Positions 1 to 56,900 of a DNA stretch of 64,000 nt are shown piece by piece. Every line of letters starts with the position of its first letter. Position 1 is the stretch's first letter. Both the position numbers and the translations under genes were made by a program. Source of the stretch: Anaeramoeba ignava BMAN (taxonomy: Eukaryota > Protista > Anaeramoebae); contig JAPDFW010000137.1 of assembly GCA_028826165.1 (NCBI GenBank), positions 1-64,000 of the forward strand, written 5' to 3'. A model generated the notes under the pieces. It had not been told where the DNA came from. It made no database searches and saw only the letters and a list, made by a program, of their open reading frames with translations.

Positions 1-3000
1 ATATTTTTGTTTGTTTTGAAAATCAAAATTAAAATAATAAATAAAATTACTCTCTAATTTATTATTTATTTTTAATTTAAAAGAAAAAGATTAGATTTAA
101 ATTGTTTTTGTTTTTGTTTTTGTTTTTGAAAAATAAAATAATTAAATTGAGGAAATTTTGTATATTTATTAAGATTTTCCATTAATTTCCAAATATATTT
201 AATTTAATTTAATTTAATTTAATTTAATAAATATATTAAAATCTTTATTAAATTATTAAAAGATTAATTGAAGAAAATAATAATAATATAGATTTATATT
301 TTAAGGTTATGAAAGATAGAGAGATTATAAAGGGAATAAATAATAAAGATGAAAAGAGGAATATATTTATTTATATTTATATTTATATTTATATTTATAT
401 TTTATATTTATATTTATATTTATATTTTGTATTTGTATTTATATTTATATTTATATTTTATATTTATGTATTTATATTTATATTTATATTTATATTTAGA
501 TTTATATTTATATTTATATTTATATTTATATTTATATATTTATATTTATATATTTATATATTTATATTTGTATTTATATTTATATTTATATTATTTATAT
601 TTATATTTATATTTTATATTTATATTTATATTTATATTTATTTAGTTAAAATATCTAAGATAAGAGATAATTACAAAACAAGATAAATTCAATTTGAAAA
701 AAAAATCAAAAATAATAAAATAATTTATCAAAAATTAAATTTAATTAATAAGAAAGAAAGAAATTGAAAATATTCAATCTAATCAATAAAAATATGAGAA
801 ATAAATAATATTTTAAATAAGATTAAAAGAAATAATACAAAAAGTAAATTCTTTTAAATTAAATTAAAATTAAATTAAATTAAATTAAAATTATTCAAAT
901 AAAAATAAAAAAGATTTTTGAATAATTTATAAATAAAAGTGTTAATTATTCTTATTTAAAATTTATAAAAATAATAAATAAATAATTTATAACAAGAAAT
1001 ATCAAAATTTTTCTTATTTTATAAAATTAGGAAATAGATATAAATTTAAAGAAAAAAAATCAAATTAAATATAGAAATTCAAAAATATTAAATTAAAATT
1101 AATTAAAACAAGATATTACAAATTTTAAATTTATATAAATTAATTATCAGAAAATCATTTCTTAATATATTTGGTATTATTAATATTATCAATTTTCATC
1201 TATTAGGAATTATTCAAAATAAAAATAAAAATAATATATTAACTCTTTTTTTTTTTGAAATTTTAAAAATGAAAAGAATAAAATATCAAATAAAAATATT
1301 CAAAATTTATTTAAAAATATTAAAAAGAAAGAAAATTGAAATAATAAAAATGAATTAAATTCACAAAAATAAATCAATTCTAAATTTAAAATATAATTTA
1401 TTTATTAATATTAATGAATTAAATAGAATAAATAAAACTCAAAAATTAGAAATAAATTTAAAAATATATTTCTAAAATAAAGAATAACAATTTCCATAAT
1501 ACAAGAAATATATTTGAGAAAAAGAATATATTTTGAAAATTATTATTAATTTAAGAAATAAATCAAATAGGAATAAAAATATTTATCAAATAATATATAT
1601 ATAAGTAAATATACTCAATAAATTAATAATTATAATAAAAATATTAATATAAATTAAAATAGAAGAATTAAATGTTATTAGAGAATATATGAAATATATA
1701 AATCAATATCAAATTATGAATAAAATAAATCAAATAATTGAAAAAAAAATTAGGAAAGGAAATAAAAATATATAATAAGATGAGGATATTTTAATCAAAT
1801 AAAATAAATAAAATTGAAAAAAAAACATTTGTGATTTAATACTCAAATCATATTTAATATTCAAAATAATGTAATAAGAAATATAAATCATTTTTTTTTG
1901 GAAATCAAAAATTAAATTAAAAATAAAAATTATCTCAAAAATAAAAATAAATATTAATCAAGAAAGAAAAAAAGAAAAAAGAAATATTATCAATCAATAA
2001 AATAATAATTTCAAGATATAATAATGAGAAGAATTGAGAAATCAAAAAAAAAATTTAAATCAGAAATCAATTCTCAATATTTCAATAATTAGAAATATAA
2101 AAGATAATAAATTTAAGAAAAGAAAATTTATATAAATAAATATAAATAGATAAAAAAATTAAGATTGGAATTAATTTAACATAATTTAATTCAAAAAAAA
2201 AAGTAAATAATATTGATAAAAAAATATTTTGAGGAATAAAAAATAGATAATAAAAAATAGATAAATAAATTAATGAATTGAAATGAAAAGAAAAAGAAAA
2301 AGAAAAAGATATTATATTTAATAATAAATAAAAAATAATTTAAATAACTTATTGATGAAATTAAAATACAAGTTAAAGAATCAATATTTAAATAAAATAA
2401 AATAAAATAGAAAATAAAATAATAATCATACAATTTGATATTAAATAAATTAAATAAATAATTCCTTATAATAAATTAATAAAAATAATTTAAAATTCAA
2501 GAAATAGTTCAATTTATGAATATAATAAGATAAAAATTTATCAAAAATTATTATATTATATTATATTATATTGAAAAAGAAAATTCAAAAAATATTATTA
2601 TTATCAATTTATTAAATAAAATAAATAGAATAATGAAAGAATAAATAAAGAATATGAATCAAAAAGTAATAAATTAAATGTTTTCAAGAAGAATTATGTT
2701 TATCTATAAACAATTTATTAATAAGAATATTTATTATTTTTGAAAAGAATATTTGAATAAATTAAATTATTATGAGAATATATCTTGTATAAATAAATTG
2801 GATTTAGAAAAATAATGAATATAAGAATAGAAATTTTAAAGTTACAAAATAAATTAATATAAATAAAATAACCTTATATAATAAATATAAATATTCAAAA
2901 ATATTTTGATATAATTAATTAGAAAATTAATTAGAAAAATTATTATCAAATTTCATCAATATTATTATTATTATTTAAAACTTCTTAAATAAATATTATA

Positions 3001-4560
3001 AGGTAAATAAATATTGAATAAATCAGAAAGAGATATATTATTTATCCCTTTTTATTATTTGGAATGATTAATCATTTTATTATTGAAGAGATAAAATTTA
3101 TTATTGATTATATGATTATATTGATATAAAAATTTTCATATATAGAAATTGTATTTAAAGTTCAAATAATATTAATAACAATTCTTGAAAATTATGAATT
3201 AAAATCAAATAAAAATAAAAATAAAAATAAAAAGGAAATATTAAATATCTTGAAATTATTCTTAATTCAAATAAATATATTGAAAATAATATTCAAAGAA
3301 AAATTCAAAGAAAAACAATTTTTAATTAATTAATTAAGGTTTATAATCAATTTAAATAATATTTCAAATCATTTATAAAATAATTATTTTATAAAATAAC
3401 AATTCTTACATAATTATATTATGTAACAAAAACCCTAATAATATTATTATTAAAAAGAAATAATATCAAAGAATAAATTTAATTGTTAATAAACATATTA
3501 AATCAAGTTTATTTAAAAAAATTAATTTATATTCATATATTTTGACTTTTTGGAATGAAATAAACATTTCTAATTTCATAATTCAAATAAATATAAGAAG
3601 ATAGAAAATAATAGAAAAATTAAAATAAAATTAGAAAATCTTAATTCAAGAAATTATATTCAATCTTTATAAATAAGATAGAAATAAGGAATACAAAATA
3701 TTTCAAAATAATTCAAAGAATATTTATTTTTTAGAAAGATAAAAAGAAATTAGAATGAATCAAGGATAGAAAAAAAAATAACTTATTTAGAAATAATTAA
3801 ATTATAAACCAAAAAAAAAATCAAAGAATAAAAAAATATCTAAAATATCAAAAAAAATATTATTCTTCTAAAATTAATAATTTTCATAAATGGAATCAAT
3901 AAATAAACTTATTCAAATGAAAAATAATAATATGAAATATATCTATGTTATTTAAAAGAAAGAAAAAGAAATATTAAATTATTTTCTTTATTTGTAAATA
4001 TTAAATTTATCAAGAAATAAGAAATAAATGAATAAAAATCAATTCATTCAATTAAATAAATAAACAAAAACTAATAAAATAAATTAACAGAAGGTAAATA
4101 TATGAAAAAAATAAACAATAGAATATATTCAGAAGATATTTGAAATTATATCATAATTTATAGTTAATGGGAAATAGAATATAATATAAGAAAGATGAAT
4201 AGAAAATGAGAAATAATGAAGAAAATAAAATTCAAAATCAAATTCAATAATGAGAATAAAATTAATAAGATAAATAACAAGGATAATTCTGAAAACAAAA
4301 ACAAATTCAAAAATAAAAACAAATTCAAAGAAGAAAAAGAAAAAGATTCAAAGAAAATAAATTATAACAAAGAAAATAAATCTAATAAGGGATATAAAGA
4401 ATATTTGAAAATATAAATTAACAAAGATAAAGATAGAATTAGAGTTAGAATCAAAATAATGAAAAGAATAATCAGAATATTATACAGATTATTTGATAAA
4501 TTATTCTTAATTGAAAAGATTAAATAGAATATGATTATAAAAATTAATTTAAAAATGAAT
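1..4560. other. AT-rich, non-periodic region with no credible ORF; possible decayed sequence
   Basis: Almost only A/T with scattered G and few C on the + strand. ORF-track hits (309, 349, 2191, 4216) are low-complexity artefacts. Confidence 0.4.
360..642. repeat. (TATATT)n microsatellite
   Basis: Hexamer tandem array read directly. Confidence 0.9.
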
Positions 4561-4829
4561 TATTCCATTTTCCTTTATTTTCTTTTTATCAAAATTACTT
4601 CAAAAACATAAAAAAAACATGTAGAAATCTCACTTATGATTTTCTTAATAAAATCAAAAATAAAAATCTTATTTAATATTTCCCCAATTTCAAATTAAAT
4701 TAAATTAAATTAAATTAAATTTAAATTATTTTTTTTTTCAAATGAACTAAATAAATATTATTTTATTTGGGAAATTTGTTTTTGTTTTTATTCAAAAGAA
4801 AAATCACAAAAAAAAATGTTTATTTTTAC

Positions 4830-7800
4830 ATACTATTTTTTTTCAAAATAAAATAAAAACAAATTTTCATTCAATAAATAATTCATTTTTTTCAAAAAAA
4901 AAGGAAATTTTGATTTTGATTTATTTTTACTTTCTATTATAAATAATTTAATATTATTCAATTTAAAAATAAAAATTGATTATTTTTGATATTTATTTAT
5001 TATTTAAATAAAATAATTTTAATTGTAATTGTAATTGTTTTTGTTTTTGTTTTTTGAATAATAAAAATGTAATTTAAATTGAAAAAATTTTATATTATTT
5101 TACATCTTGTTTATTCCAATCATCTCCTAAATTAATAAAATGATTAAAAAGATCCTTATTAATTGGTTCCTTTTGTGCAAAATAATGTAATAAAGTTGCT
5201 CCATAAGTCTTTATTTTTGTTTTTAAATTTAATATTGGAAAAAACAAAATAATTCAAAAAAGAAATGAATTAAAATAAATTATTCATAATTTAAATAATA
5301 AAAATGAGTTAATAAATTAAGAACTAATTGTTGTTAATTTTAATCAAAAAATAATTCAAACCTTATTTTTCTAAATTTATTTTTTAAAAAATTAAATAAA
5401 ATTTAAATTAAAATGTTTTTGTTTTGTTTTTGTTTTTGTTTTGAATTACATAATCTGATTTGTTAAATTCATCATCTAAAAGCTTTAATTCCTTTTCAAT
5501 TTCAACGTTGTTACTCTTTAATTTGTAAATTTTTATGTGTTAAAATTAAATAATAAATCAAAATAGATTAATTTTTTTTTCCAAAATAATAATAAATATT
5601 AATTTAATATTATTTTAATAATAATTTCTTTTTTTTTAAATTTAATTATTTACTGGCTATTTATTAAATTAAATAATTAATTAAATAATTAATAAAAAAA
5701 GGATTGTGAAGAAAAAAAATTGGCAAAAAAAAAGATATTTACTTCCTATTTATTTTATGAATAATTGTTTTTGAATTAATAAATTTTTAAATATTTTATG
5801 AATAAATTAAAATAATTGGTTTAAAAAAAAGGAAAAAAATATTTAATTTTTAAATTCCACAAATGAACAAAATGGCAAGGAAAATATATTTACTTCCTAT
5901 TTATTAAATAATAAATAATTATAAATTAATAAATAAAAAGAATTGAGCATAAAAAAAGGAGAGAATATTTATTTTGAAATTTCTCAAATTAAAAAAATTG
6001 GGAAAATGAGAAAAAATGGGAAATGAAAATATATATTTACTTTCTATTTATTTTATAAATAATTTTCATTTTTATTTTGAGAATTGTTTTTTGTTTTTAA
6101 ATATATTAATTTACAGGCTATTTTGTTTTTATTAAATATTTTCAATTCAAATTATTTAAAATAAATTTATTGATTTAAAAATATAATTACTGGCTATTTT
6201 TATTTGAATGAAAATTATTAATTAGTTTCGGAAATGAATATATTAATAATTAATAAATTAGAGATTAATTAAATTCAAATTATATTTTTGATTTAAATTT
6301 GAAAATATATATTAATTTGAAATAAAATTACTTGTATTCGAGAAAGTAAATCTTTCTCTCTTTCTAATAATTCTTTTTCCTTCTTGATTAATTCTTGTTC
6401 TTTGTTTCCTAAATCAGTTTCTTTCTTGGTTAATTCTTTTTCTTTCTTTTGATTTTCTTTCTTTTCTTTAGCGTTCTTCTTTTCCATCTTTCCTAAATCG
6501 ATTTCTTTCTTTCCTAAATCAGTTTCTTTCTTTCCTAAATCAGTTTCTTTCTTTCCTAAATCAGTTTCTTTCTTTCCTAAATCAGTTTCTTTCTTTCCTA
6601 AATCAGTTTCTTTCTTGGTTAATTCTTTTTCTTTCTTTTGATTTTCTTTCTTTTCTTTAGCGTTCTTCTTTTCCATCTTTCCTAAATCAGTTTCTTTCTT
6701 TCCTAAATCGGTTTCTTTCTTTCCTAAATCGGTTTCTTTCTTTCCTAAATCAGTTTCTTTCTTTCCTAATTCTGCTTCTTTTTTCGTCACATCTTTTTCT
6801 TTGATTTTAATTTCTTTTTGTTTCTTTTTATTATCTTCCTTTTCTTTAGTTAAGGTTTCTTTGTCTTTAGTTAAATCTTCTTTTTCTTGAATTAATTCTT
6901 TTGTTTTCTTTTTAAGATCTTTCTTTTCTTGAATTAATTTTTGTTCCTTAGCTTGTATAGAAGTTTCGATCTATTTATTTTTATTTTTATTTTTGTTTTT
7001 ATTTTTGTTTTTGTTTTTATTTTTATTTTTGTTTTTGTTTTTATTTTTGTTTTTATTTTTGTTTGTTTTTGTTTTTGTTTTTGTTTTTGTTTTTATTTTT
7101 GTTTTTAATTTTATTTTTGTTTATTTTTGTTTTTATTTTTGTTTTTATTTTTGTTTTTATTTTTGTTTTTGTTTTTGTTTTTGTTTTTGTTTTTGTTTTT
7201 ATTTTTTGTTTTTATTTTTGTTTTTGTTTTTATTTTTATTTTTGTTTTTGTTTTTGTTTTTATTTTTGTTTTTGTTTTTGTTTTTGTTTTTGTTTTTGTT
7301 TTTATTTTTGTTTTTGTTTTTGTTTTTGTTTTTATTTTTGTTTTTAATTTCAAAATAAATGAAGTTACATGGTGATTGTAGATTTCAACAACAGTTTCAA
7401 AAGGAAAAAAAGAGAATTTCTGAATTTGATACATTTGATAATCTGAAATTGGATGAAGAAATTGAATATGTTCCAATAATTGAAAAATGGATTTATAAAA
7501 TGGAATTTGTAGATTCTTTAAATGTAATTTTGAATATTCTCGTTGAGGTTTCAAATTGTTGTATTTGAACCATTCAATAACTAAACCTGGAATTAATTTG
7601 AGTTTATTGGTTGTTTTGTTTAAAAGCATCATTTCAATAAAGCAAATAACTTCATGTTGATTGATTTTTTGAACTTGATTTGATTGAATCATTTGGTCAA
7701 TATTCTGAGTTAATAAATCTCCACAAGATTGAATAAGAAAATCTGATGAAATTCTTTTAGATTTAGAATATACATCAACTAAGTTATCTTGATTTAATGA

Positions 7801-8592
7801 TTGTTGAATATCTTTTTCAATTTTGATTTTAAGTTTTGGTAATATTAGTTTATCAGCTAATTTGTGATAAGAATCAAAAGATTGTTGAGGAATTTTAATT
7901 TCTCCAGTATACAAAAAACCCATAACAGGATCAACAATTCCATATTCAAATTCAGCGAAATTGATTATTTCCAAATCTTTTTGTCGGAATAATGAATGAA
8001 AAAATTGGCTTCTCGAACTTAAAATTAATTTATGGCAACGAAATTCTTTTAGATTTTTACCACAAATTATTGTAAAATCAGAAAGGGCTGCTTCAGTTTT
8101 CAATAAAGCTTTGAGGTCTATCGTGCATTCATCAGAAAGTAAAGCATCAAGTTGATTGTTTGGTAAATTCAATAAGTTTGTATTCATTGCATTCATTGTG
8201 TTTGTATTCATTGCATTCATTGTATTTGTATTCATTGCATTCATTGTATTTGTATTCATTGTGTTTGTATTCATTGTGTTTGTATTCATTGTGTTTGTAT
8301 TCATTATGTTTGTGTTCATTGTGTTCATTGTGTTTGTATTCATTGCATTTGTATTCATTGCATTTGTATTCATTGTGTTTGTATTCATTGTGTTTGTATT
8401 CATTGTGTTTGTATTCATTGTGTTCATTGTGTTTGTATTCATTGCATTTGTATTCATTGTATTTGTATTCATTGTGTTTGTATTCATTGTGTTTGTATTC
8501 ATTGTGTTTTCATTCATTGTGTTTGTATTCATTGTGTTTGTATTCATTATGTTTGTATTCATTATGTTTGTATTCATTGTGTTTGTATTCAT
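4830..8592 (-). CDS. BTB/POZ protein with MNTNT repeats, KKETDLG coiled-coil repeats and an ankyrin-like repeat; multi-exon, 3' end uncertain
   Basis: Exon 8592-7369 has the BTB motif SDFTIICG..EFRCHKLILSSRSQFF..MGFLYTG. GT-AG intron 7368-6971. Exon 6970-6332 is in frame with ORF 6293..6790. Six 3-nt exons follow, then exon 5515-5450 (SNNVEIEKELKLLDDEFNKSDY), exon 5208-5104 (TYGATLLHYFAQKEPINKDLFNHFINLGDDWNKQD, ankyrin-like) and two more 3-nt exons. All introns are phase 0. Confidence 0.75.
5654..6193 (-). other. Six candidate 3-nt microexons (CCA, CCT, AAA, GAA, GAA, CCA = PPKEEP)
   Basis: AATAG|NNN|GTAA on the minus strand at 6193-6191, 6117-6115, 6043-6041, 5896-5894, 5745-5743 and 5656-5654, separated by 71-148 nt AT-rich introns. 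Confidence 0.7.
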
Positions 8593-31373: not shown

Positions 31374-34300
31374 TTAAACATTCATTTTTCCATTATTTGA
31401 ATTTGTGAATGAAACCATTGATTCTTTAAGCATTTCTTGTCTTTTTTTGTACCAAATATTCAGACCAATTCCTGAAAAAACAAGAAAAACTCCAATTAAA
31501 TATTTCCAAGTAAAAGGTTTTGAAAAAATAAAAAAGGAAGTTAAAATTGTGAAAAATTTGCGAAGAGTTGTTGTTGTGACAGCAATATGAACTCCGAATA
31601 GTTCTATAAGTATTAAAACTGTTGCTGAACCAACATATCCAACTGCGCCAAATGGCACTATCATTAGAAATATTGTTTTATTTTTTAGTGCGTAATCAAA
31701 AAAATGGAAAAATTCTCCTGATATTAAAATTAGTGCTAAGATTATCATGGATGCTATTAAATAGATATAATGAACCATTTCTGATTGAGTTGGTCTATAT
31801 TTTTTCATAACTCTCTAAAATTTTTTAAATTTTAAATATAAATTTGATTTTAATTTTAATTTTAATTTTAATTTTTAATTTAATTTTGAATATAAATTTG
31901 ATTTTAATTTTAAATATAAATTTAATTTTAATTTTAATTTTAATTTTAATTTAATTTTAATTTTAATTTTAATTTTAATTTTAATTTTGATTTTAATTTT
32001 AATTTTAATTTTGATTTTAATTTTAATTTTATAAATGAATTTTGAATTTTAATTTTAATTTTAATTTGATTTTAATTTTAATTTTAATTTTGATTTTAAT
32101 TTTAATATTAATTTTGAATTTTAATTTTTAATTTTAAATAATTTTAATTTTAATTTTTAATTTTAATTTTAATTTTAATTTTAATTTTAATTTTAATTTT
32201 AATTTTAATTTTAATTTTAATTTTAATTTTGAATATAAATTTAATTTTAATTTAAATTTTAATTTTAATTTAAATTTTAATTTTAATTTTAATTTTAATT
32301 TTAATTTTAATTTTAATTTTAATTTTAATTTTAATTTTAATTTTAATTTTAATTTTAATTTTAATTTTAATTTTAATTTTAATTTTAATTTTAATTTTAT
32401 AAATGAATTTGAATTTTAATTTTAATTTTAATTTGATTTTAATTTTAATTTTAATTTTTAATTTTAATTTTATAAATGAATTTTAATTTTAAAAATATTT
32501 TACTTCCTGATTATTTCCCATAAAAGAATCACCAATTAAAGCAAACATCATAATTAAAATTCCAGCATAATTAAATCTTGGTGAAATTGCTATGTTTTCA
32601 ACAGTAAAAACAACTATTCCAAAAATCATAAGAATTGCAGCAGAATATTGAACCCAAGAATATCGAACATTTTGAATAAATTTACCAGCTATCATAACAA
32701 AAATAATTTTCGAACTTTTCAAAATTACTTGAACAGGAAAATCCAAGTATACACATGCCCAATTTGAAAGTCCCATACTTCCAATAACATAAACTGCAAG
32801 CATAATATATTCATTGATTGGTGCTCTAAATATAAATTTAATTATAAATTTAATTATATATTTAATTATATATTTAATTATAAATTGTAAAATAAATTAT
32901 AAAATAAATTGTAAAATAAATTATAAAATAAATTATAAAATAAATTATAAAATAAATTATAAAATAAATTATAAAATAAATTATAAAATAAATTATAAAA
33001 TAAATTATAAAATAAATTATAAAATAAATTATAAAATAAATTATAAAATAAATTATAAAATAAATTATAAAATAAATTATAAAATAAATTATAAAATAAA
33101 TTATAAAATAAATTATAAAATAAATTGTAAAATAAATTATAAAATAAATTATAAAATAAATTATAAAATAAATTATAAAATAAATTATAAAATAAATTAT
33201 AAAATAAATTATAAAATAAATTATAAAATAAATTATAAAATAAATTATAAAATAAATTATAAAAATAAATTATAAAATAAATTATAAAAATAAATTGTAA
33301 AATAAATTGTAAAAATAAATTATAAAATAAATTATAAAAATAAATTATAAAATAAATTATAAAATAAATTATAAAATAAATTATAAAATAAATTATAAAA
33401 ATAAATTATAAAATAAATTATAAAATAAATTATAAAATAAATTATAAAATAAATTATAAAAATAAATTGTAAAATAAACTATAAAATAAATTGTAAAATA
33501 AATTATAAAATAAATTATAAAATAAATTATAAAATAAATTATAAAATAAATTATAAAATAAATTATAAAAATAAATTATAAAATAAATTATAAAATAAAT
33601 TATAAAATAAATTGTAAAATAAATTGTAAAATAAATTCTTAAAATAAATTGTAAAATAAATTGTAAAAATAAATTGTAAAATAAATTATAAAATAAATTA
33701 TAAAATAAATTGTAAAAATAAATTATAAAATAAATTGTAAAATAAAATTATAAAATAAATTATAAAAATAAATTGTAAAATAAATTATAAAAATAAATTA
33801 TAAAATAAATTATAAAATAAATTATAAAATAAATTATAAAATAAATTATAAAATAAAATTTATAAAATAAATTATAAAATAAATTATAAAAATAAATTAT
33901 AAAAATAAAAAATTAAAAAAAAAAAAATTATAAAATAAATTATAAAATAAATTATATAAAATAAATTATAAAATAAATTATAAAATAAATATAAAAATAA
34001 ATTATAAAAATAAATTATAAAATAAATTATAAAATAAATTATAAAAATAAATATATAAAATAAATTATAAAAATAAATTATAAAAATAAATTATAAAATA
34101 AATTATAAAATAAATTATAAAATAAATTATAAAATAAATTATAAAAATAAATTATATAAAATAAATTATAAAATAAATTATAAAAAAAACAAATAAAAAT
34201 AAATTATAAAATAAAATAAACAAATTATAAAAATAAATTATAAAAATAAATTATAAAATAAATTATAAAAATAAATTATAAAATAAATTATAAAAAAATA

Positions 34301-37300
34301 AATTATAAAATAAATTATAAAAATAAATTATAAAAATAAATTATAAAATAAATTATAAAAAAAATTATAAAATAAATTATAAAATAAATTATAAAAAATA
34401 AATTATAAAATAAATTATAAAATAAATTATAAAATAAATTATAAAATAAATTATAAAATAAATTATAAAATAAATTATAAAAAATAAATTATAAAATAAA
34501 TTATAAAAAAAATTATAAAATAAATTATAAAATAAATATATAAAATAAATTATAAAATAAAATTATAAAATAAATTAAAAATAAAAAATAAAAAAATTAT
34601 AAAACAAAATTATAAAATAAATTATAAAAATAAATTATAAAATAAATTATAAAAAAATAAAATAAATTATAAAATAAATTATAAAAATAAATTATAAAAT
34701 AAATTATAAAAAAATAAATTATAAAATAAATTATAAAATAAATTATAAAATAAATTATAAAAATAAATTATAAAAAATAAAAAAAAAAAATAAATTATAA
34801 AATAAATTATTAAAATAAATTATAAAAAAATAAAAATAAAAACAAAATAAATTATAAAATAAATTATAAAATAAATTATAAAAATAAATTATAAATAAAT
34901 TATAAAATAAATTATAAAATAAATTATAAAATAAAATTGTAAAATAAATTATAAAATAAATTATAAAAATAAATTATAAAAATAAAATAAAATAAATTAT
35001 AAAATAAATTGCAAAATAAATTATAAAAACAAATTATAAAAATAAATTATAAAAATAAATTATAAAATAAATTATATAAAATAAATTATAAAATAAATTA
35101 TAAAATAAATTATAAAATAAATTATAAAATAAAATAAAATAAAAATAAAATAAATTATAAAATAAATTATAAAAATAAATTATAAAATAAATTATAAAAA
35201 TAAAATAAAATAAATTATAAAATAAATTATAAAATAAATTATAAAATAAATTATAAAAACAAAATTATAAAAATAAATTATAAAATAAATTATAAAATAA
35301 ATTATAAAAAATAAAATAAAAAATTATAAAAATAAATTATAAAATAAATTATAAAATAAATTATAAAAATAAATTATAAAAATAAAATTATAAAATAAAA
35401 TAAAAAATAAAAATAAATTATAAAAAAAATAAATTATAAAATAAATTATAAAATAAATTATAAAATAAAAACAAAATAAATTATAAAAAAAAAAAATAAA
35501 AATAAAATAAATTATAAAATAAATTATAAAAATAAATTATAAAATAAATATAAAAAATAAATTATAAAATAAATTATAAAAATAAATTATAAAATAAATT
35601 ATAAAATAAAATTATAAAATAAATTATAAAATAAATTATAAAATAAATTATAAAAATAAATTATAAAATAAATTATAAAATAAATTATAAAAAAAATAAA
35701 AAACAAAATAAAATAAAATTCCTTTTATAAAATAAATTATAAAAAATAAATTATAAAATAAATTATAAAAAAAATTAAAAATAAAATTATAAAAATAAAT
35801 TATAAAATAAATTATAAAATAAATTATAAAAAAAAAAAATTATAAAATAAATTATAAAAATAAATTATAAAATAAATTATAAAATAAATTATAAAAATAA
35901 ATCATATAAAATAAATTATAAAATAAATTATAAAATAAATTATAAAAATAAATTATAAAAATAAATTATAAAATAAATTATAAAATAAATTATAAAAATA
36001 AATTATAAAACAAATTATAAAATAAATTATAAAAATAAATTATAAAATAAATTATAAAAATAAATTATAAAAATAAATTATAAAATATCATATAAAATAA
36101 ATTATAAAATAAATTATAAAAATAAAATTATAAAATAAATTATAAAATAAATTAAAACAAATTATAAAAATAAATTATAAAATAAATTATAAAATAAATT
36201 AAAAAAATAAATTATAAAAATAAAATAAAATAAAAAAAAATAAATTATAAAATAAAAAATAAAAATAAAAATAAAAAAATAAATTACAAAAATAAAATTA
36301 TAAAATAAATTATAAAATAAATTATAAAATAAATTATAAAATAAATTATAAAAAAAAATTATAAAAATAAATTATAAAATAAATTATAAAATAAATTATA
36401 AAATAAATTATAAAAATAAATCATAAAAATAAATTATAAAATAAATTATAAAATAAATTATAAAATAAATTATAAAAATAAATTATAAAATAAATTATAA
36501 AATAAATTATAAAAATAAATTATAAAATAAATTGTAAAATAAATTATAAAATAAATTATAAAAATAAATAAATTGTAAAATAAATTGTAAAATAAATTGT
36601 AAAATAAATTGTAAAAATAAATTGTAAAATAAATTATAAAATAAATTATAAAATAAATTATAAAAAATAAATTGTAAAATAAATTAAAATAAATTATAAA
36701 ATAAATTGTAAAAATAAATTAAAATTAAAAATAAATTATAAAAATAAATTATAAAATAAATTATAAAAATAAATTATAAAATAAATTATAAAATAAATTG
36801 TAAAAAATAAATTTAATTTTTAAAATAAATTGTAAAATAAATTATAAAATAAATTATAAAATAAATTATAAAATAAATTATAAAATAAATTGTAAAATAA
36901 ATTATAAAATAAATTATAAAATAAATTATAAAATAAATTGTAAAATAAATTATAAAATAAATTATAAAAATAAATTATAAAATAAATTATAAAATAAATT
37001 ATAAAATAAATTAAATTATAAATTATAAAATAAATTAAATTATAAATTATAAAATAAATTATAAAATAAAAACAAAATAAATTATAAAATAAATTATAAA
37101 ATAAATTATAAAATAAATTATAAAATAAATTATAAAATAAATTATAAAATAAATTATAAAATAAATTATAAAATAAATTATAAAATAAATTATAAAATAA
37201 ATTTAATTATAAATTGTAAAATAAATTGTAAAATAAATTATAAATTTAATTATATATTTAATTATATATTTAATTATAAATTGTAAAATAAATTATAAAA

Positions 37301-40128: not shown

Positions 40129-43100
40129 TTATTTGAGTTTTTCAAATTCATTATTAATCCATTCACTATCTTTCATTGGGAAACCACGAGAAGGAGAATA
40201 AGGTTTTTTACGAGGAACAAAAGAGATGCAATCTGTAACAGGACAAACATCGTAACATAATCCACAACCTGTACAATCATCAGTAATAACAGGTATATGT
40301 GTAACAGAATCGAATTTAATAGCAGAATATCCTGTATCAGCGCAAGTTAAATAACATTCTATTTTAAATTAAATTAAATTAAATTAAATTAAATCAATTA
40401 AATTAAATTAAATTAAATTAAATTAAATTAAATTAAATTAAATTAAATCTTTTAAATAAAATCAATTATTTTAAATTAAATTAAATTAAATTAAATCAAA
40501 TTAAATTAAATCAATTATTTTAAATTAAATTAAATAAATTAAATTAATTAAATTAAATTAATTATTTTAAATTAAATTAAATCAAATTAAATTAATTATT
40601 TTAAATTAAATTAAATTAAATTAAATTAAATTAAATTAAATTAAATTAAATTAATTTAAATTAATTAAATCAAATAAATTAAAATTAAATTAAATTAAAT
40701 TAAATAAATTAAATTAATTAAATTAATTATTTTAAATTAAATTAATTAAATTAATTATTTTAAAATAAATTAAATTAAATCAAATCAAATTAAATCAAAT
40801 TAAATTAAATTAAATTAAATTAAATTAAATTAAATTAAATTAAATTAAATTAATTAAATTAAATTAATTAAATTAAATTAAATTAAATATTTTAAATCAA
40901 ATTAAATCAATTAAATTAAATAAATCAATTAAATTAAATTAAATCAATTAAATTAAATTAAATTAAATTAAATCAAATCAAATCAAATCAAATTAAATTA
41001 AATCAAATCAAATCAAATTAAATCAAATTAAATTAAATTAAATTAAATTAAATAAATTAAATCAAATTAAATTAAATTAAATTAAATCAAATCAAATTAA
41101 ATTAAATCAAATTAAATCAAATTAAATCAAATTAAATCAAATTAAATTAAATTAAATCAAACTAAATATTTTAAAATAAATTAAATTAAATTAAATTAAT
41201 TAAATTAAATTAAATTAAATATTTTAAATTAAATATTTTAAATTAAATCAAATTAAATTAAATCAAATTAAATATTTTAAATTAAATCAAATTAAATATT
41301 TTAATTAAATTAAATCAAATCAAATTAAATATTTTAAATTAAATCAAATTAAATTAAATAAATTAAATTAAATTAAATAAATTAAATTAAATTAAATATT
41401 TTAAATTAAATCAAATTAAATTAAATATTTTAAATCAAATAAATTAAATTAAATAAATTAAATTAAATTAAATTAAATTAAATCAAATCAAATAAATTAA
41501 ATTAAATTAATTATTTTAAATCAAATCAAATCAAATTAAATTAAATCAATTATTTTAAATTAAATTAAATTAAATTAAATCAAATTAAATCAATTATTTT
41601 AAATTAAATTAAATAAATTAAATCAAATTAAATCAAATTAAATTAAATTAAATTAAATATTTTAAATTAAATTAAATTAATTAAATCAAATTAAATTAAA
41701 TCAAATTAAATCAAATTAAATTAAATATTTTAAATTAAATATTTTAAATTAAATTAAATTAAATCAAATTAAATTAAATCAAATATTTTAAATAAAATTA
41801 AATTAAATAAATCAAATTAAATTAAATTAAATTAAATTAAATTAAATTAAATTAAATTAAATTAAATAAATCAAATTAAATTAAATTAAATTAAAATAAA
41901 TTAAATCAAATTAAATATTTTAAATTAAATTAATTAAATAAATTAAATACTCCCGCAATTAATGCATTTAGTCTCATCCGCTATAAAAGCAACAACATGA
42001 TCAACATCTTCACTAGGAAGTTGGGATGTCCCAACAATTCGATTAACAGTAAGACCAACAATATCATTGATTCTGGGAATCTTATCAACTTTGCCAAGCT
42101 CAACAAACTCATTCTCATCAAACTTAACATCACTAAAAGAGAATTTCTTAAGAGCTTCCTTCTTAGCCTTGCGATTCTCAATCTCAAAATCTCCGAAACG
42201 AGGAAGTGCCTTGGAATATGAAAGATCAACATGCTGGCGATGTCTTTGGAATTGGAACTCCCAAGAATTGCGGAGATCGGGACGACCAAGCATGTACAAA
42301 AGACATCTGAGACCTGTGATATAGTCGTTGACAACAGTGTAGTCTTGGTTCTGTATCGATGAGCAGAATTGGATCACAGAGGCTCCTGCATAGATGTATT
42401 GAAGAGCCGCCTCTGCAGAGTCGCATCCACCAATACCAAGCACTGGGGATGGACTGATCTGTTTGTATGCAGAGGAAATAGCCTTGAGTGCTACAGGTCG
42501 CACAATGTTTCCGGAGACTCCTCCGTAGGAAGTTTTCTGGATGCTTCTGTCCTTCCCAACTGCAGGCCAACCTGTGGAATCGAATCGGATACCAGCAACT
42601 CCTGACACGGTATTGATGCCTGATATTCCTGTTGCGCCTCCCTTTTTGGCTGCTTCGGCAATGGCTGCTACGGATGTTGCATTGGGTGTTAATTTGGCGA
42701 AAAACGGAATCTTGACTGCTGCTGCGACCCATTTGCAAACTTGCTCAACTGCTTCAGGATTGGTGCCGATGGTCATTCCAAAAGCCTCTCCATGACGTCC
42801 AGAAATATGAGGACAACTTAAATTCAATTCAAGCGCGTCTGCTCCGTATTCTTGTGATACTTTCGCCAGTTTTTCCCATTCGGTTTGTTCGTAGATCGCC
42901 ATGATTGACGCAATCACAATGCGGTCGGGGAAGTCTTGCTTCAGCTCCTTGATCGCCTTGCACCAATACTCGCTTGTCTTCTCGGAAATCAGCTCAATAT
43001 TCAAGAATCCTTGTTGATGCGGCCCGAAGAGATTGTGGTCAGCGCTCTTTGTGATACGAGGGGAAACGTTAGTCGATACGTTGTTGTCAAGCGCAAAAGT

Positions 43101-46100
43101 TTTTGTGACTGCAAAGCCCCATCCAGCTTCAAATGAACGACGAATCATCGCAGCTGTTGTTGATGGTGGTGAGCTTGCCAATCCAAAAGGATTAGGGAAA
43201 GTCAATCCGGCAACATCGACACTCAGATCGACAAGATCAACCTCTGTAAAGAATCCAGGAAGATTTGGTTCTGCATTTGCAATTTCTTTGTCGCCGTATT
43301 TCATCTGGAGATATCTGTGAATCCCCCACGCTGCTGTCTTGCCGTCGTTTGAGGCTTCCACTGTCATTTTCGATCCTACAATATCTCCTCCCGCAAAGAC
43401 AATCTCGTTTTTCTTGGATTGCATTGTTTCTGCTTCCACAACAGCAAGTCCACGCTCAAAATCAACAAGCGGATCAAGTGCGCGCATAAATGGCGAGTCT
43501 CTCATCTGCGCACCGAAAGCTGATACAATGAAGTCGCATTTAACAAATGATTTCTGATCTGCGTCAATTTCATATACGCCCTTATCGTTCTTTGCGAACC
43601 GCACAAATTCAACCCCGAAAATCTTACCCTCGCGCACATCCACTTTGTTGGGTGTTGAGAACGGGATCAACTCCACTCCCTCCTCTCGCACAGAGACCAA
43701 CTCTTCTTCAACTGCGCGCATGTCGTCTGTGGATCTTCGGAAGCATAATGAAACGCGCTCTGCGCCGCATCTGAACGCTGTAAGACAGCAATCCATGGCA
43801 GTGTCTCCCGCACCAAGCACGATAACATGCCCGTGAAGTTTGGGTAGTTCTTCAAGTTTCTGCACAATGCCTGGTTTTGATGCGAGTGCGGCCTTCTGGA
43901 GAAATGTTTTCGAGGTGTAGAATCCGCTCTCTTCAGTCAGATCCTTAAACGCATCAATGTAATTCGCAAACGGTAATCCAACCCCTAAGAAGATAGCCTC
44001 GTAGTTGTCTTTCTTCAATGTTTCGTAGTTGAATTTCTCTGTTCCAAACTCAGAATTATATTGGATTTTAACTCCCAGATCCTCCATAAGTTTTACTTCC
44101 CATTTGACAGCTTTATATGGAAGTCGGAACGCTGGGATTTCTGCAGAGGATATTCCTCCTGGGAAAGCGTTCTTCTCGAATACTGTGACATTCTTGTATC
44201 CAAGTCTTCCCAGAAACGATCCGCAACTGATGCATGATGGTCCGCTTCCGATTAATGCAATTTTCGCATCAAAAGATTTCGGTAATTTGTCAAGTGCTGG
44301 TAAACTTGGATCCCGAATTTGTGGGATTTTCATTTTCATAAATGTTTCCACTGCGAAGTGTTGTAATCCAGATATGTTGATTGCTCCCCGGCTTGTGTTG
44401 GAAAGATTGCAAGCTCCTGAACAAAGCTCGCTTACTGGGCATACCATTCCGCATGATAATCCCACTGGGTTCTCTGATAAGATCATCTTTGCTGCTCCGT
44501 AAAAGTTCCCTGTTGACATGCATTGAATGAATTGTTTTATATCGACTTGTGCTGGGCAGGATTTTGTACATGGTGCATCTGCGCATTTGAGGCATCTTCT
44601 TGCTTCTACGATTGCTTCTTCTTGTGTGAGTGTTGTTTTTTTGATATCTTCGAAGTTATTATGTAGTTCGCATCCCTTTTTAAATTCATTTTAAAATTTA
44701 TTTTTAAAATTTATAATTAAACTCATTTTAAATTTATAATTATATTTATAATTATATTTATAATTATATTTATAATTATATTTATAATTATATTTATAAT
44801 TATATTTATAATTATATTTATAATTAAATTTATAATTATATTTATAATTATATTTATAATTATATTTATAATTATATTTATAATTAAATTTATAATTATA
44901 TTTATAATTATATTTATAATCAAATTTATAATAAAATTTATAATTAAATTTATAATTAAATTTAAAATTAAATTTATAATTAAATTTATAATTAAATTTA
45001 TAATTATATTTATAATTAAATTTATAATTAGATTTATAATTAGATTTAAAATTAGATTTATAATTAAATTTATAATTAAATTTATAATTAAATTTATAAT
45101 TATATTTATAATTAAATTTATATTTAAATTTATAATTAAATTTATAATTAGATTTATAATTAGATTTAAAATTAAATTCATAATTAAATTTATAATTAAA
45201 TTTATAATTAAATTCATAATTAAATTTATAATTATATTTATAATTATATTTATAATTATATTTATAATTAAATTTATAATTATATTTATAATTATATTTA
45301 TAATCAAATTTATAATTAAATTTATAATTAATTTTTATAATTAGATTTATAATTAAATTTATAATTAAATTTATAATTAAATTTATAATTAAATTTATAA
45401 TTATATTTATAATTAAATATTATAATTATATTTATAATTATATTTATAATTAAATTTATAATTAAATTTATAATTAAATTTATAATTAAATTTATAATTA
45501 AATTTATAATAAAATTTATTTTAAAATTTATTTTACAATTTATAATTAAATTTATAATTAAATTTATAATTAGATTTATAATTAAATTCATAATTAAATT
45601 TATAATTATATTTATAATTAAATTTACAATTAAATTTATAATTAAATTTACAATTAAATTTATAATAAAATTTATAATTAAATTTATAATTAAATTTATA
45701 ATTAAATTTATAATTAAATTTACAATTAAATTTATAATAAAATTTATAATTAAATTTATAATTAAATTTATAATTAAATTTAAAATTAAATTTATAATAA
45801 AAATTTATAATTAAATTTATAATAAAATTTATAATTAAATTTATAATTAAATTTATAATTAAATTTATAATTAAATTTATAATTAAATTTATAATTAAAT
45901 TTATAATTAAATTTATAATTAAATTTATAATTAAATTTATAATTAAATTTATAATTAAATTTAAAATTAAATTTATAATTAGATTTATAATTAAATTTAT
46001 AATTAGATTTATAATTATATTTATAATTAAATTTATAATTAAATTTATAATTAAATTTATAATTAAATATATAACTAAATTTATAATTATATTTATAATT

Positions 46101-50975: not shown

Positions 50976-53900
50976 ATGGACAGTTCATATCAAACACTTA
51001 TTAATGAATGGAAAAAGATCGGTTGTGTAAAAGTCAAATATTTTTCTCAATTTTTAATGAATCAATTTTTATTTTTTTTTTATAAAAAATTTAATCAATT
51101 TAATCAATTTAATCAAAGAATGTTGTTCAACCGATAAAAACTGTTAATTTAAGACTTGAACCAAAAAAAGTTTTATTATCACAAAATGATGTTATTTTAA
51201 CAAAAGATAATCAAGTTTATCAATTTGATATTCAAGTATTTTTAATCAAAACAAAAATTTAATTTAAATTTATAAGATCAAAAAAAACTCAAATTAAATT
51301 AAAAAACAACTATAAAATTTATTTAACAATTTAATTAACAATTTAATTAACAATTTCAAGATCAATTTAATTAACTATTTAATTAACTATTTAATTAACT
51401 ATTTAATAAATGATTTCAAGATCAATTTAATATTTGATTTCAAGATCAATTTAATAATCCATTTAACAATTCATTTATCAATTTATTTATCAATTTATTT
51501 ATCAATTTATCAATAAATTTATAATTAATTTCTTAATTTCTCAATATAATAATCAAATCAAAACTTTAAAATCAATCTAATAATCCATTTAACAATAAAT
51601 TTAATAATAAATTAATTTCTTAATTTCTCAATATAATAATCAAATCAAAACTTTAAAATGAAATTATCAATCCATTTAACAATTTATTTATCAATTTAAT
51701 AATCCATTTAAAAATAAATTAATTTCTTAATTTCTCAATATAATAATCAAATCAAAACTTTAAAATGAATTTATCGATCCATTTAACAATTTATTTATCA
51801 ATAAATTTAATATTTGATTTCAAGATCAATTTATCTATCAATTTATTTATCAATTTATTTATCAATTTATTTATCAATTTGTTTATCAATTTATTTATAA
51901 ATTTGTTTATCAATTTATTTATCAATTTATTTAATAATTTATTTATCAATTTATTTATCAATTTATTTATCAATTTATTTATCAATTTATTTATCAATTT
52001 GTTTATCAATTTATTTATCAATTTATTTAATAATTTATTTATCAATTTGTTTATCAATTTATTTATCTATTTATTTATCTATTTATTTATCAATTTATTT
52101 ATCAATTTATTTATCAATTTATTTATCAATTTATTTATCAATTTATCTATCAATTTATTTATCAATTTAATAATCCATTTAACAATAAATTTAATATTTG
52201 ATTTCAAGATCAATTTATTTATCAATTTATTTATCAATTTATTTATCAATTGATTTATCTATTTATTTATCAATTTATTTATCAATTTATTTATAATTAA
52301 TTTCTTAATTTCTCAATATAATAATCAAATCAAAACTTTAAAATGAATTTATCGATCCATTTAACAATCGATTTAACAATTTATTTAATAATAAATTAAT
52401 TTCTTAATTTCTCAATATAATAATCAAATCAAAACTTTAAAATGAATTTATCGATCCATTTAACAATTTATTTATCAATAAATTTAATATTTGATTTCAA
52501 GATCAATTTATCTATCAATTTATTTATCAATTTATTTATCAATTTATTTATCAATTTGTTTATCAATTTATTTATAAATTTGTTTATCAATTTATTTATC
52601 AATTTATTTAATAATTTATTTATCAATTTATTTATCAATTTATTTATCAATTTATTTATCAATTTATTTATCAATTTGTTTATCAATTTATTTATCAATT
52701 TATTTAATAATTTATTTATCAATTTATTTATCAATTTATTTATTAATTTATTTATCAATTTATTTATCAATTTGTTTATAATTTATTTATCAATTTATTT
52801 ATCAATTAATCTATCAATTAATCTATCAATTTATTTATCAATTTATTTATCTATTTGTTTATCTATTTGTTTATTATTTATCAATTTATTTATCAATTTA
52901 TCTAAAAGAATGAATCTCAAATCGCAAAATTAAAAAAACATGAATCTAAAATCAAATTCATTTTGAGACAAGAAAATACACTTATAACATCAGATAGCGA
53001 AGGTCTTATCGTTATCTGGAATTTAATCGAAAAAAGAATCCAAAGATTAATCAAGCTAACAAGTTCTGTCACAAGCATGACTATATACAAAACAACACTA
53101 TTTGCAAGCTCTCTTACTCCATCAATCATTCACCAATGGGATTTTAAAACAGGAGAAAAAATTACTCAATATGAAGGTCATGAAAAATCTATTAATCAAA
53201 TCCAATTTTTACCTCAAAAATCTACTCTCTATTCTTGTTCAGATGATGGAACTGTTATTGCTTGGTCTACTTCTGTTAGTTTATTCTTTCGAAATAATAT
53301 TTATATTTATATTTATATTTTAAATCAAATTATCAATTTAGGATCAAAACAAAAAAATCCGTTTAAAATTCCAAGGACATTATGATCCAGTTGTTTGTTT
53401 TTGTATTATGGAAGAAAAAGATTTGCTTTTTACAGGTTCAAAAGGTAATTCTTTCTTTTTTTCAAAATTCAAAATTCAAAATTCAAAATTCAAAATTGAT
53501 TTTTTTTTGATTTGATTTGGAAATGTAGATCTTACAGTTATTTGTTGGGATATGAAAGTAAAAAATATTTCCATTTCTTTCTGTTTTTGTTTTTCTTTCT
53601 TGTTTTCTTTTATATCATAATTTTTCAAAAAAAACAAAAACAAACAAACAAACAAAAAGAATGCTCAACCAATCCAAAAATTTTATGATTTTTCATCATT
53701 GACTACAAAAATGATCGCAGAAAAAAATCAAGTATTTATTGGATTTGATGATGGCACAGTTATCGGTATCAAACCAAATAGAAGAAAATCATTTGAAGTT
53801 GGAGTGTATCCAGGACACCAACAAAAGAATTACAGAAATTCGCACCTTTGAAAAAAGAATAATCACATCATCAGAAGATGAAACAATTCGAATTTTTTCA

Positions 53901-56900
53901 ATAGACTCGAAAAAATCAAAAATACTTTGTGAAGGACACAAATCGAGTGTAAAAACCTTTTCCACTTCTAACGAAGGAAATCTTGTATCAATAGATGCAG
54001 ATGGAGAAGTATTTTTTTGGCCAGTAAAAATTTTAAAAGCAGAAAAGGAAAACAAAAAGAAAACAAAGAAAACAAAAACAAGAACAAACGAAGAAATTCC
54101 CAAACAAGAAATAGAAAAATCAATACTATCATCCAAAAAACTGAATGAAAAAGTAACAGTGTTTATTGACGGAAAACAATATCAAGGAGATTCAAACAAA
54201 AGTATTTTGGAAGTTTGCAGAGAAAATGGGATTGATATCCCGTCTTTGTGTTATCATCCACGATTGCATCCACTTTCCACATGCAAATGCTGCGTTGTGC
54301 AAATTGAAACCACAGCAAACTGTTTCCGCAAAGCGTGTGCATGTGCAACGGAAATTCGGGATGGGATGAAAATAATCACAAATTCAAATGAAATCAAAGG
54401 GTTTCAAAGAAACGCAATTTTGGAGTTGCGACAAAAACAGCGCAGTCGAGCATTAACTCTCAAAGACGAGAGTTTCGACAAATCAACGGAATTTGGACGT
54501 TTACTCACGAATGTATACGATAAATTTGTGGATAATTCCAATGGGGCAATTTCTATTGATTTATCCAAATGCATTGATTGCGCAAGATGTGCTCAAGTCT
54601 GCGACAAAATCCAAGGCATGTCAATCATCTCGTTTCCTGCGCGATCCATTGGCGCCATTGAAACAGTTCTACGTACAAAAGGGAATTTTCTTTCGGAATC
54701 ATCTTGTATTGCTTGCGGACAGTGTTCCGTTTTTTGCCCCACTGATGCCATCTCAGAATTTGATCAAACTTCTGTTTTAAAGCAGCAAATCAAGCTTGGC
54801 GACAAGAGACTTGTTGTTGGAATTGCACCTTCTGCAAGAGTCTCTATTGCAGAGGAGTTTGAAATGGAACCAGGTGCTATTTCTGTTGAAAAGTTTGTCT
54901 CTGCTTTGAGAATGCTTGGTTTTGATGATGTTTTCGATCTTCAGTTTACTGCTGATTTAACAATTATGGAAGAGGGAACTGAGTTGTTAAAAAGATTGAA
55001 AGATCCAAATGCAGTTCTTCCAATGTTCACATCCTGTTGTCCTGCTTGGATTAATATGGTGGAAAAAGTATATTAATTAAAAAGAATTTCAATCCAAAAA
55101 TTTATTTATTTATTTATTTATTCTATAATAAGTTGTATCCATTTCTAATACCTCATCTTTCAAGTGTAAAATCTCCTCAACAAATATTTGGAGCAATTGT
55201 TAAAACTTTTTATGCTCATAAAATCAAAATTGATCCACAAAATATTTATTGTGTAACAATTACACCTTGTACTGCAAAAAAACAAGAAATTCATCGTGAA
55301 GAAATGAAATCTTCAGGTTTTCAAGATGTGGATCTTGCTTTAACAGTAAGAGAAATAGGAAAAATGCTGAGAGAAATTTCGATTAATTGGGAATCAATTA
55401 AAGAAACATCATTTGATGATCCTCTTGGAAAGTCTTCTGGTTCTGGTTCTTTATTTGCGTCAACTGGTGGAGTTATGGTAGATTTCGATTTAATATTGTT
55501 TTAAATATTTTAAATATTTATTTAATATTGTTTTAATAATATTTTAAATATAGGAAGCAGCAATAAGAACTGCATATGAAATTGAAACCAAAAAAACATT
55601 TCCAAAATTGGTATTCCAGGAATTAAGAGGATTAGAAAACATAAAACAAACAACAATAGAATTTGAAGAAAGAAACACTAAAGTTAGTTGTAGTTAACAG
55701 TGGAGCATCAATACACAAACTAATCAACGATTTCCAAAAGGGATTAATAACATTCGATTTTGCAGAGGTGATGGCATGCCCAGGAGGATGTCTTGGAGGC
55801 GGAGGACAGCCACGTTCACATATCAACATTTTACCCAAAAGAATACAAGCAGTTTATGACAACGAATTTTCACTTCCATATAGAAAATCACACACAAACA
55901 AATCAATAATGAAAATTTATGAAAAATTTCTGAACGAACCAATGTCAGAAATATCAAGAAAATTACTTCACACAAAATATCGACCAAACGCGCATCAAAG
56001 TGAAGTCAAACAAAACTCAATCAATATGTTTAAATTTGTTATGGAAGGTCTTAGTGAACATAACTCTGTCCTTGTTTTATTCGGATCTCAAACTGGAACT
56101 GCTGAAATGGCTGCAATTAAAATTACACAAATTTTATTAGAATCCAAAATCAAAGCAAGACTTTTTGAAATGAATAATTATCCCATTACAAATTTATCTT
56201 CAGAAAAATTCGTTATTCTTATCACTTCCACTTTTTGGGAAGGATCTTTTCCTGAAAATGCAATCCAATTTTGGAAAGATTTGCAATCCTTCTCCTTCAG
56301 ATTGAAAAACATTAAATATTCCATTTTTGGTTTAGGTAATTCAACTTATACTCATTTTAATCATGCAGGTCGATTGTTGGATATTCAATTAAAAAAATTA
56401 GGAGCTCATTGTTTTTTAAAAATGGGAGAAGGTGATTATCAAGCTCCAGATGGGTAAATCAAAAATTCAAATCAAATTTAAATCAAAATTAAATCAAAAT
56501 TTAAATCAAAAATTAAATCAAAATTTCAAATCAAAATTTAAATCAAAAAATCAAAAATTAAATCAAAATCAAATATTAAATCAAAATTAAATCAAATTAA
56601 ATCAAAAATTAAATCAAAAATTAAATCAAAAAGGTATTAAATCAAAATAAATCAAAATCAAATATTTAAATCAAAAATTAAATCAAAAAAATCAAAAATT
56701 AAATAAATCAAAAATTTAAAAAAATTTAAATCAAAATTAAATCAAATATTAAATCAATATTAAATCAAAATTTAAATCAAAATTTAAATCAAAATTAAAT
56801 CAAAAATTAAATCAAATATTAAATTAAATTTAAATCAAATATTAAATCAAAATTAAATCAAATTTAAATCAAAATCAAATCAAAAATTAAAATTTATTTT

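Follow-up and report, generated by a model that had tools for sequence, protein, structure and literature searches.

Candidate single-codon exons in a BTB/coiled-coil/ankyrin gene of Anaeramoeba ignava and in tandem arrays of its BTB-adaptor families

The stretch analyzed here (the window) comprises the first 64,000 nucleotides (nt) of contig JAPDFW010000137.1 of the anaerobic amoeba Anaeramoeba ignava BMAN (assembly GCA_028826165.1). Close to the contig start, its minus strand carries a gene for a protein with BTB, coiled-coil and ankyrin parts, in which isolated triplets are framed by splice-site-like letters of the form TAG-NNN-GTAA. An original prediction, made from the letters of the window, listed eight such sites as candidate exons of a single codon each. 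Their coordinates and spelling are exact, and all eight lie on the minus strand within this one gene. Each triplet stands between (A/T)ATAG on its 5' side and GTAA on its 3' side, the same consensus as in the ordinary introns of the gene, and all eight hence possess the canonical AG acceptor and GT donor that define a spliceosomal 3-nt microexon.

The gene begins with exon 1 (7369-8592; all parts are on the minus strand), which holds the start codon, an N/T/M-rich tandem repeat and a BTB/POZ domain (Pfam BTB, E = 2.4e-18) and whose donor reads GTAACT. Intron 1 (6971-7368, 398 nt) is an (AAAAC)n-type microsatellite throughout, with the 3' end AAATAAATAG. Exon 2 (6332-6970, 213 codons) encodes a Lys/Glu-rich coiled coil with a 7-residue tandem repeat and closes in phase 0 with the codons for R-I-Q; its weak RNase_Y_N match reflects coiled-coil composition only. 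Six triplets with the motif follow: CCA (Pro, 6191-6193, in the context aaaatag-CCA-gtaatt), CCT (Pro, 6115-6117), AAA (Lys, 6041-6043), GAA (Glu, 5894-5896), GAA (Glu, 5743-5745) and CCA (Pro, 5654-5656). Downstream of these lie a 66-nt exon of 22 codons (5450-5515), which is present in the public gene models P0121 and P0123, and an ankyrin-like exon of 105 nt (5104-5208). The last two triplets are AAA (Lys, 4931-4933) and TAT (Tyr, 4830-4832). A putative last exon of seven codons plus TAA (4549-4572), with an in-frame aaataaag acceptor, lies 257 nt past the TAT triplet. Between 6332 and 4830, the introns separating these parts would measure 138, 73, 71, 144, 148, 86, 138, 241, 170 and 98 nt. 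The range of 71-170 nt given by the original prediction holds for the introns it meant, the six linker triplets being 71-148 nt apart. Its claim of phase-0 introns and stop-free triplets also agrees with the letters: the coiled-coil exon ends in phase 0, the 66-nt exon is in phase 0 at both ends and none of the eight triplets is a stop codon.

The 3-nt spacing is not expected by chance in this window. TAG-N3-GTAA occurs 11 times, compared with 2.93 ± 1.74 expected from 100 dinucleotide-preserving shuffles, none of which reached 11. Spacers of 0-2 and 4-12 nt yield 0-2 sites each, and spacer 0 is found twice as against 11 times for spacer 3. Three of the 11 N3 sites fall outside the gene. The site at 31686 (plus) is antisense to a coding open reading frame (ORF) and that at 32682-32691 (minus) lies within an ORF; both were rejected as chance matches. 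The third, TAG-AGA-GTAA at 47-56 (minus), sits 50 nt from the contig start, and its gene context lies beyond the contig edge.

The genome-wide comparison of spacer lengths that the original prediction proposed was carried out by counting AATAG-Nk-GTAAA on both strands of the 42.8-Mb A. ignava assembly. The pattern occurs 1,219 times with a 3-nt spacer and 124, 91, 130 and 124 times with spacers of 2, 4, 5 and 6 nt, respectively, so that N3 is about ten times commoner than its neighbors. Reversed-pattern controls number 452 for N3 and 387-1,341 for the other spacers. Measured against these controls, the 3-nt form is enriched and the neighboring spacers are depleted. The 6-nt spacer is likewise unfavored, and the signal therefore does not reflect a general liking for small in-frame exons. 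Of the first 100 N3 sites listed, 94 sit in arrays or pairs. Several isolated strict sites on contig C1 proved to be chance matches, namely L029 at an exon start of a DPP3-like gene and L031, L032 and L034 within exons; the isolated sites L030 and L035 were assigned neither to an exon start nor to an exon interior.

Most of what can be learned about such arrays comes from relatives of the window gene. Up to 26-32 triplets occur in succession, at intervals of 60-180 nt and in any intron phase. Two paralogs of the window gene, L002 and L065, carry 32 triplets each in the corresponding region, which in L065 spell a Lys/Asp-rich linker free of stops. The intron-like units of L002 (~72 nt) are ~96% identical to their nearest neighbors, and the three letters between them change from unit to unit. 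These letters are by far the most variable of the arrays: exon letters are about 20 times more diverse than intron letters. In the window gene itself, the intron units are ~72% alike.

A second host is the large BTB-BACK-TLDc family, with at least 494 candidates. In many of its members, an array separates a large exon, with its conserved G-P-x-F-G end, from a 53-codon last exon, and the number of units ranges from 1 to 26 among paralogs. Here the intron is a 177-nt unit with at least 888 matches of 96-100% identity on at least 17 contigs, invariably with a spacing of 3 nt. Identity among units from four contigs is 97-99%, compared with 86-94% for the adjoining exons of different loci. All 177-nt-unit arrays whose flanks were read lie at one TLDc loop, including 26 of 26 with both flanks parsed. 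The first and last unit of each array have end sequences of their own, as is seen at the edges of a homogenized tandem array. Two tandem paralogs are alike unit by unit at 94-100%, one array being longer by nine units. In the tandem TLDc genes L004 and L005 (C1:1,054,000-1,072,000), whose array introns are 94-100% alike unit by unit, three of 16 triplets differ (5 of 48 letters), and all of these differences change the amino acid. This hints that exon letters evolve faster than introns in this pair.

Eight triplets are too few for a test of coding constraint, and the signs of such constraint, an open frame and a codon-position bias, are found in the sister arrays. The upstream exon of the TLDc genes ends in phase 1, so the codons straddle the triplets. 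In 17 regular TLDc arrays, comprising 151 triplets and 168 codons, the phase-1 frame that the flanking exons impose contains no stop, even though two of the triplets themselves read TGA. Permuting the letters within triplets gave 9.3 stops on average, with at least 1 in each of 3,000 trials, and the other two frames contain 2 and 37 stops. Among phase-0 arrays, none of 50 tallied triplets is a stop, nor is any of the 32 in L065. Moreover, the guanine-plus-cytosine (GC) content of the three codon positions amounts to 0.48, 0.21 and 0.14 in phase-1 arrays, as against 0.48, 0.30 and 0.02 in those of phase 0. The letter richest in AT thus shifts with the reading frame, which argues against a splice-site preference as its cause. 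In their richness in Y, D, S, G and P, the peptides spelled by the arrays are like the uninterrupted loops found in intronless TLDc paralogs. This loop is the variable spot of the domain, with 2-21 and mostly 3-5 residues in the intronless paralogs; skipping of a whole array would leave one or two loop residues. Independently of one another, frame, composition and protein-family fit support the view that the triplets code, and together they support it well, if indirectly.

The fit to a protein family is seen in L033, an ankyrin-BTB gene whose ankyrin gaps lie in C1:1,324,172-1,325,700. Each of its repeat exons of 32-33 codons aligns to positions 2/3-32 of the 33 positions of Pfam Ank, and each of four scanned gaps of ~200 nt contains exactly two AG-NNN-GT sites and no others. 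In a fifth gap, two more triplets were found by reading. Because the exons span only positions 2/3-32, the two residues at the hairpin tip of each repeat would be absent unless both triplets were included. The last 33 codons of the window's ankyrin-like exon are colinear with the L033 repeat exons (the reference being offset by one codon in the alignment) and end at the same repeat position. By analogy, the AAA and TAT triplets of the window gene would supply hairpin positions 2 and 3, and the putative last exon would carry the repeat on from position 4, with His at position 9. Residues demanded by the protein family are thus found in L033 and, for the last two window triplets, by colinearity; the six linker triplets are under no protein-family constraint. 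In L033, the acceptor before the fifth repeat exon (2127-2194) is one base out of frame (ttattag plus an extra A), while the other junctions fit; this may be a homopolymer error of the assembly or a defect of one repeat.

Five near-identical copies of the window gene are present in the assembly, the window's own on C138 and the others on C1, C140, C137 and C28. All five keep all eight sites. The six linker triplets and the TAT triplet are the same in 5 of 5 copies and only the first hairpin triplet varies (AAA, GAA, GGA, GAA and AAA), whereas the putative last-exon string is kept in 4 of 5. The copies (window 4549-8592, L001, L062, L063 and L064) all lie no more than ~10 kb from a contig end, toward which transcription runs: on C138, C140, C137 and C28 this is the start, with the gene on the minus strand, and on C1 it is the end, with the gene on the plus strand. 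This arrangement points to a duplicated block from a chromosome end; the start of the window shows no telomere-like repeat.

We favor the explanation that the more than 1,200 candidates form a genome-wide class of single-codon exons, placed at variable positions of expanded BTB-adaptor families, and give this explanation as a whole a probability of about 0.72. The sites of the class would be the hairpin tips of ankyrin repeats, one TLDc loop and inter-domain linkers. Ankyrin hairpin-tip positions 2 and 3 are also the classic variable contact positions of designed ankyrin repeats. With the same confidence, the eight window triplets are read as genuine 3-nt exons included in the messenger RNA (mRNA): six of them would spell a Pro-Pro-Lys-Glu-Glu-Pro linker past the coiled coil and the other two the hairpin-tip residues of a terminal ankyrin repeat. 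The reading of the triplets as single-codon exons, with which the original prediction began, is to this extent supported, at the level of genomic sequence, by the enrichment of the 3-nt spacer, by the stop-free sister arrays whose composition follows the phase and by the ankyrin fit of L033.

How could such exons be spliced? According to the published genome analysis, the 32,108 introns of A. ignava have a modal length of 76 nt and contain 8% GC, and strand-specific 100-nt paired RNA sequencing reads of strain BMAN were mapped with Hisat2 (PMC11550330). Given this intron length, the strict intron definition proposed by the original prediction is a reasonable inference, in which each short intron would be recognized singly. 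Since a 3-nt exon is too small for a bound 3' splice-site complex and a bound U1 together, the upstream intron would be removed first. Ligation would then turn the triplet into the last three letters of an ordinary exon and expose the next GTAAAT donor, so that removal might proceed 5' to 3' in a ratchet-like manner and leave three letters in the mRNA per step. This stepwise splicing is the mechanism we prefer on inferential grounds. All splicing information would then reside in the introns, which is why intron ends can be uniform and exon letters free to vary.

As to their origin, the arrays probably gain and lose one codon at a time through unequal recombination between near-identical units. 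Several observations point to this mode of growth: adjacent triplets are identical in 20% of cases compared with 11% expected, the arrays of paralogs contain anywhere from 1 to 26 units, two tandem paralogs are alike in each shared unit despite a difference of nine units and the edge units are distinct. Our best guess for the combination of similar introns and diverse exon letters is ectopic conversion of introns together with fast evolution of the loop. Alternatively, an intron might copy itself and insert at a constant 3-nt offset. A model of 3-nt target-site duplication was judged unlikely, as it predicts identical neighbors or 6-nt exons, whereas the 20% identity of neighbors is far below the near-100% expected from such a duplication and 6-nt spacers are not enriched. 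The idea of an exon eaten away codon by codon is disfavored for the TLDc genes, in which the conserved flanks are never split.

Several observations weigh against our reading of the triplets as exons that are regularly included. Nine of 26 TLDc arrays contain a spacer of 2, 4 or 5 nt; of these, three are open only without the odd piece and two have in-frame stops. Some TLDc arrays must therefore be decaying or partly skipped, and some pseudogenes are expected in so large a family. The coding signature could also be partly a relic, if introns invaded very recently. In the window, the ankyrin-like exon has no Pfam match of its own at E <= 1, and the last exon that we propose at 4549-4572 is in no public gene model. 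The five gene copies are only 3-9% diverged, introns included, and their agreement thus says little about selection. Finally, every public gene model skips the arrays or enters an intron past the first acceptor. Flanking exons are joined directly and in frame in P0121 (a copy of the window gene), in the TLDc models P0220, P0005 and P0125 and in P0127, while P0123 and P0001 use the first acceptor and then read through the intron. An mRNA without any triplet would be viable, as skipping of any or all of them keeps the frame. Nevertheless, gene models are weak evidence either way because predictors treat exons that are beyond their models in the same way. For array genes, the protein searches yielded NCBI gene models and no others, and the clusters of array-gene proteins likewise consist of NCBI models throughout; one transcript-derived EukProt protein (P0102) comes from an intronless paralog.

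Irregular loci also deserve mention in their own right. The odd 4- or 5-nt spacers of L020, L038, L040, L041 and L051 are mostly a triplet plus an extra G or T, and mutated acceptors or donors fuse two units into a double-length intron in this group. In L051, the frame is recovered by the combination of a 4-nt with a 5-nt piece. Within the last exon of the array-bearing TLDc genes L042, L050 and L052 there is a frameshift, and part of the family is probably pseudogenized or affected by assembly errors.

Inclusion of all triplets is not the only way in which they could serve as exons. Each mRNA might retain a subset, as the original prediction suggested, giving single-residue isoforms of the linker, hairpin tip or loop. 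We regard this combinatorial use as possible yet doubtful. Every subset is in frame, and 1,113 of 1,119 joins at any distance are stop-free in phase-1 arrays (99.5%). Furthermore, arrays with a 4-nt piece are open only when that piece is skipped, and the sites coincide with variable positions of a family of ~500 members. However, overall triplet composition explains the stop-free joins, pooled shuffles giving 5.1 stops compared with 6 observed, so that selection for skip tolerance was not significant in this comparison; and the ankyrin gene needs both triplets for a canonical repeat.

A bolder extension, offered here tentatively, would see a codon-cassette system in the arrays. Each residue at a binding position (the ankyrin hairpin tips and the TLDc loop) of a BTB repertoire with several hundred members would reside on its own 3-nt exon. 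Recombination would add, delete or swap codons in frame, and the spliceosome would perhaps select among them. The introns would be interchangeable within and between paralogs and be kept uniform by the same recombination, or by self-copying to a fixed 3-nt offset. Such a system could act as a germline, and perhaps splice-level, diversifier of recognition surfaces.

A more conservative view holds that each run of triplets lies inside one long intron, that TAG-NNN-GTAA marks the junctions of tandem repeats that merely resemble splice sites and that the large exons join directly. This is how P0121, P0220, P0005, P0125 and P0127 treat the flanking exons, and the intron units are indeed tandem repeats. 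A plain repeat, however, leaves unexplained why its three most variable nucleotides stand at the junctions, why their composition follows the phase and why the frame is free of stops; nor does it account for the two triplets per gap with which the ankyrin repeat reaches its 33 positions. Single introns of 1.5-5.2 kb would in addition be outliers with respect to a mode of 76 nt and a longest annotated intron of 4,168 nt. We therefore consider direct joining rather improbable.

Recent damage is likewise an improbable account, and distinctly so. Here a self-copying intron would have shattered the loop exons of genes that are becoming pseudogenes, the triplets having coded until recently. The identity of 96-100% among at least 888 copies of the 177-nt unit, as compared with 86-94% in the flanking exons, is in line with this, as are the irregular spacers in a third of the arrays and the stops or frameshifted last exons in some. 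Conversely, old arrays of dissimilar introns (the window gene at ~72% and L033) keep every splice site and triplet, and the array peptides are longer than any ancestral loop predicts. The excess of identical adjacent triplets fits growth by duplication and not insertion into an old exon.

Tandem near-identical introns are also the hallmark of small-RNA host genes. The SNORD115/116 hosts contain dozens of consecutive repeated introns with non-coding host exons and one small nucleolar RNA per intron (PMC11608373). Although the A. ignava arrays share with them the dozens of repeated introns in one transcription unit, the view that the introns are the functional product and the 3-nt spacers incidental is hardly credible: Rfam gave no match at E <= 1 in an array and none in the window, the fold of the 177-nt unit is not better than that of its shuffles (z = 0.58) and C/D box motifs are not visible. 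No sign of a small RNA in each intron, be it a known family or a structure, was thus found in the units, and the arrays lie in frame within protein-coding genes.

Comparison with other known systems places the arrays apart. Recursive-splicing ratchet points in the long introns of Drosophila and vertebrates are exons of zero length that leave nothing in the mRNA. They resemble the present sites in that a 3' splice site adjoins a 5' splice site and that removal is presumably stepwise; in A. ignava, however, the spacer is 3 nt, three letters would be kept per step and the introns are short, whereas ratchet points subdivide very long ones. In the micro-exon genes of Schistosoma, reportedly described by Berriman in 2009 and DeMarco in 2010, exons of 6-36 nt are said to be separated by unrelated introns and to encode secreted products. 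Runs of symmetric micro-exons, a variable protein segment and skipping that keeps the frame are common to both. The A. ignava genes differ in having exons of 3 nt (6-nt spacers are not enriched), near-identical repeats as introns and BTB adaptor proteins, with BTB, ankyrin and TLDc domains, as hosts, and in exon size and domain content they are thus not of the Schistosoma type. Introners are known from Micromonas and Aureococcus. Such introner-like elements are near-identical introns in hundreds of copies, younger than their surrounding exons (PMC4457414). The 177-nt unit shares the many near-identical copies, which the window introns, ~72% alike, do not. Yet introners are dispersed singly in unrelated genes, and the 177-nt unit was found only in tandem at one TLDc site, with no dispersed insertion into unrelated genes among the arrays whose flanks were read. 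Terminal repeats or a regular target duplication were not seen in the unit, for which no systematic search for terminal inverted repeats was made. Closest in exon size are the isolated 3-nt microexons of animals and plants, for example in cytohesin-1 and RPS24, which are missed by aligners and gene predictors (PMC6314551, PMC12686416, PMC8831610). These are spliceosomal exons of exactly three nucleotides that add one residue, as proposed here, but they stand singly between long introns, in contrast to up to 26-32 consecutive candidates and more than 1,200 in a 43-Mb genome. Searches of the wider literature yielded single 3-nt exons in animals and plants and no description of arrays, and neither the A. 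ignava genome paper (PMC11550330) and its supplement nor an intein paper on the same genomes mentions micro-exons.

The base composition of the window is extreme: its GC content is ~17%, with stretches below 1%, as at 34001-36000, where 2 kb at 0.7% GC are nearly pure A+T. The genetic code is the standard one, and A. ignava models with M0811 locus tags are the nearest proteins. On the minus strand, an 858-codon ORF resembling dihydropyrimidine dehydrogenase (41943-44519; DHO_dh, Fer4_20 and Pyr_redox_2) lies in a block of 47% GC as against ~17% in the genome and was apparently acquired by lateral transfer. The window also encodes an iron hydrogenase: in one open frame at 53739-55076 (plus), initial WD40-like matches are followed up by 2Fe-2S, 4Fe-4S and large-subunit domains, as in an iron-only hydrogenase, and this frame represents an unusual fusion unless it reads through two exons.

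If the triplets are indeed exons, A. ignava would represent a new extreme of spliceosomal gene structure, with dozens of consecutive exons at the smallest length that keeps the frame, and would challenge current ideas on the pairing of splice sites and the order of their use. The public A. ignava proteome would be wrong at more than 1,000 residues in hundreds of genes, and the published intron statistics would be affected. Hypervariable exon letters next to near-identical introns would provide a natural system for the study of intron gain and concerted evolution. For the BTB-adaptor families themselves, the arrays may offer a way to evolve binding loops codon by codon.

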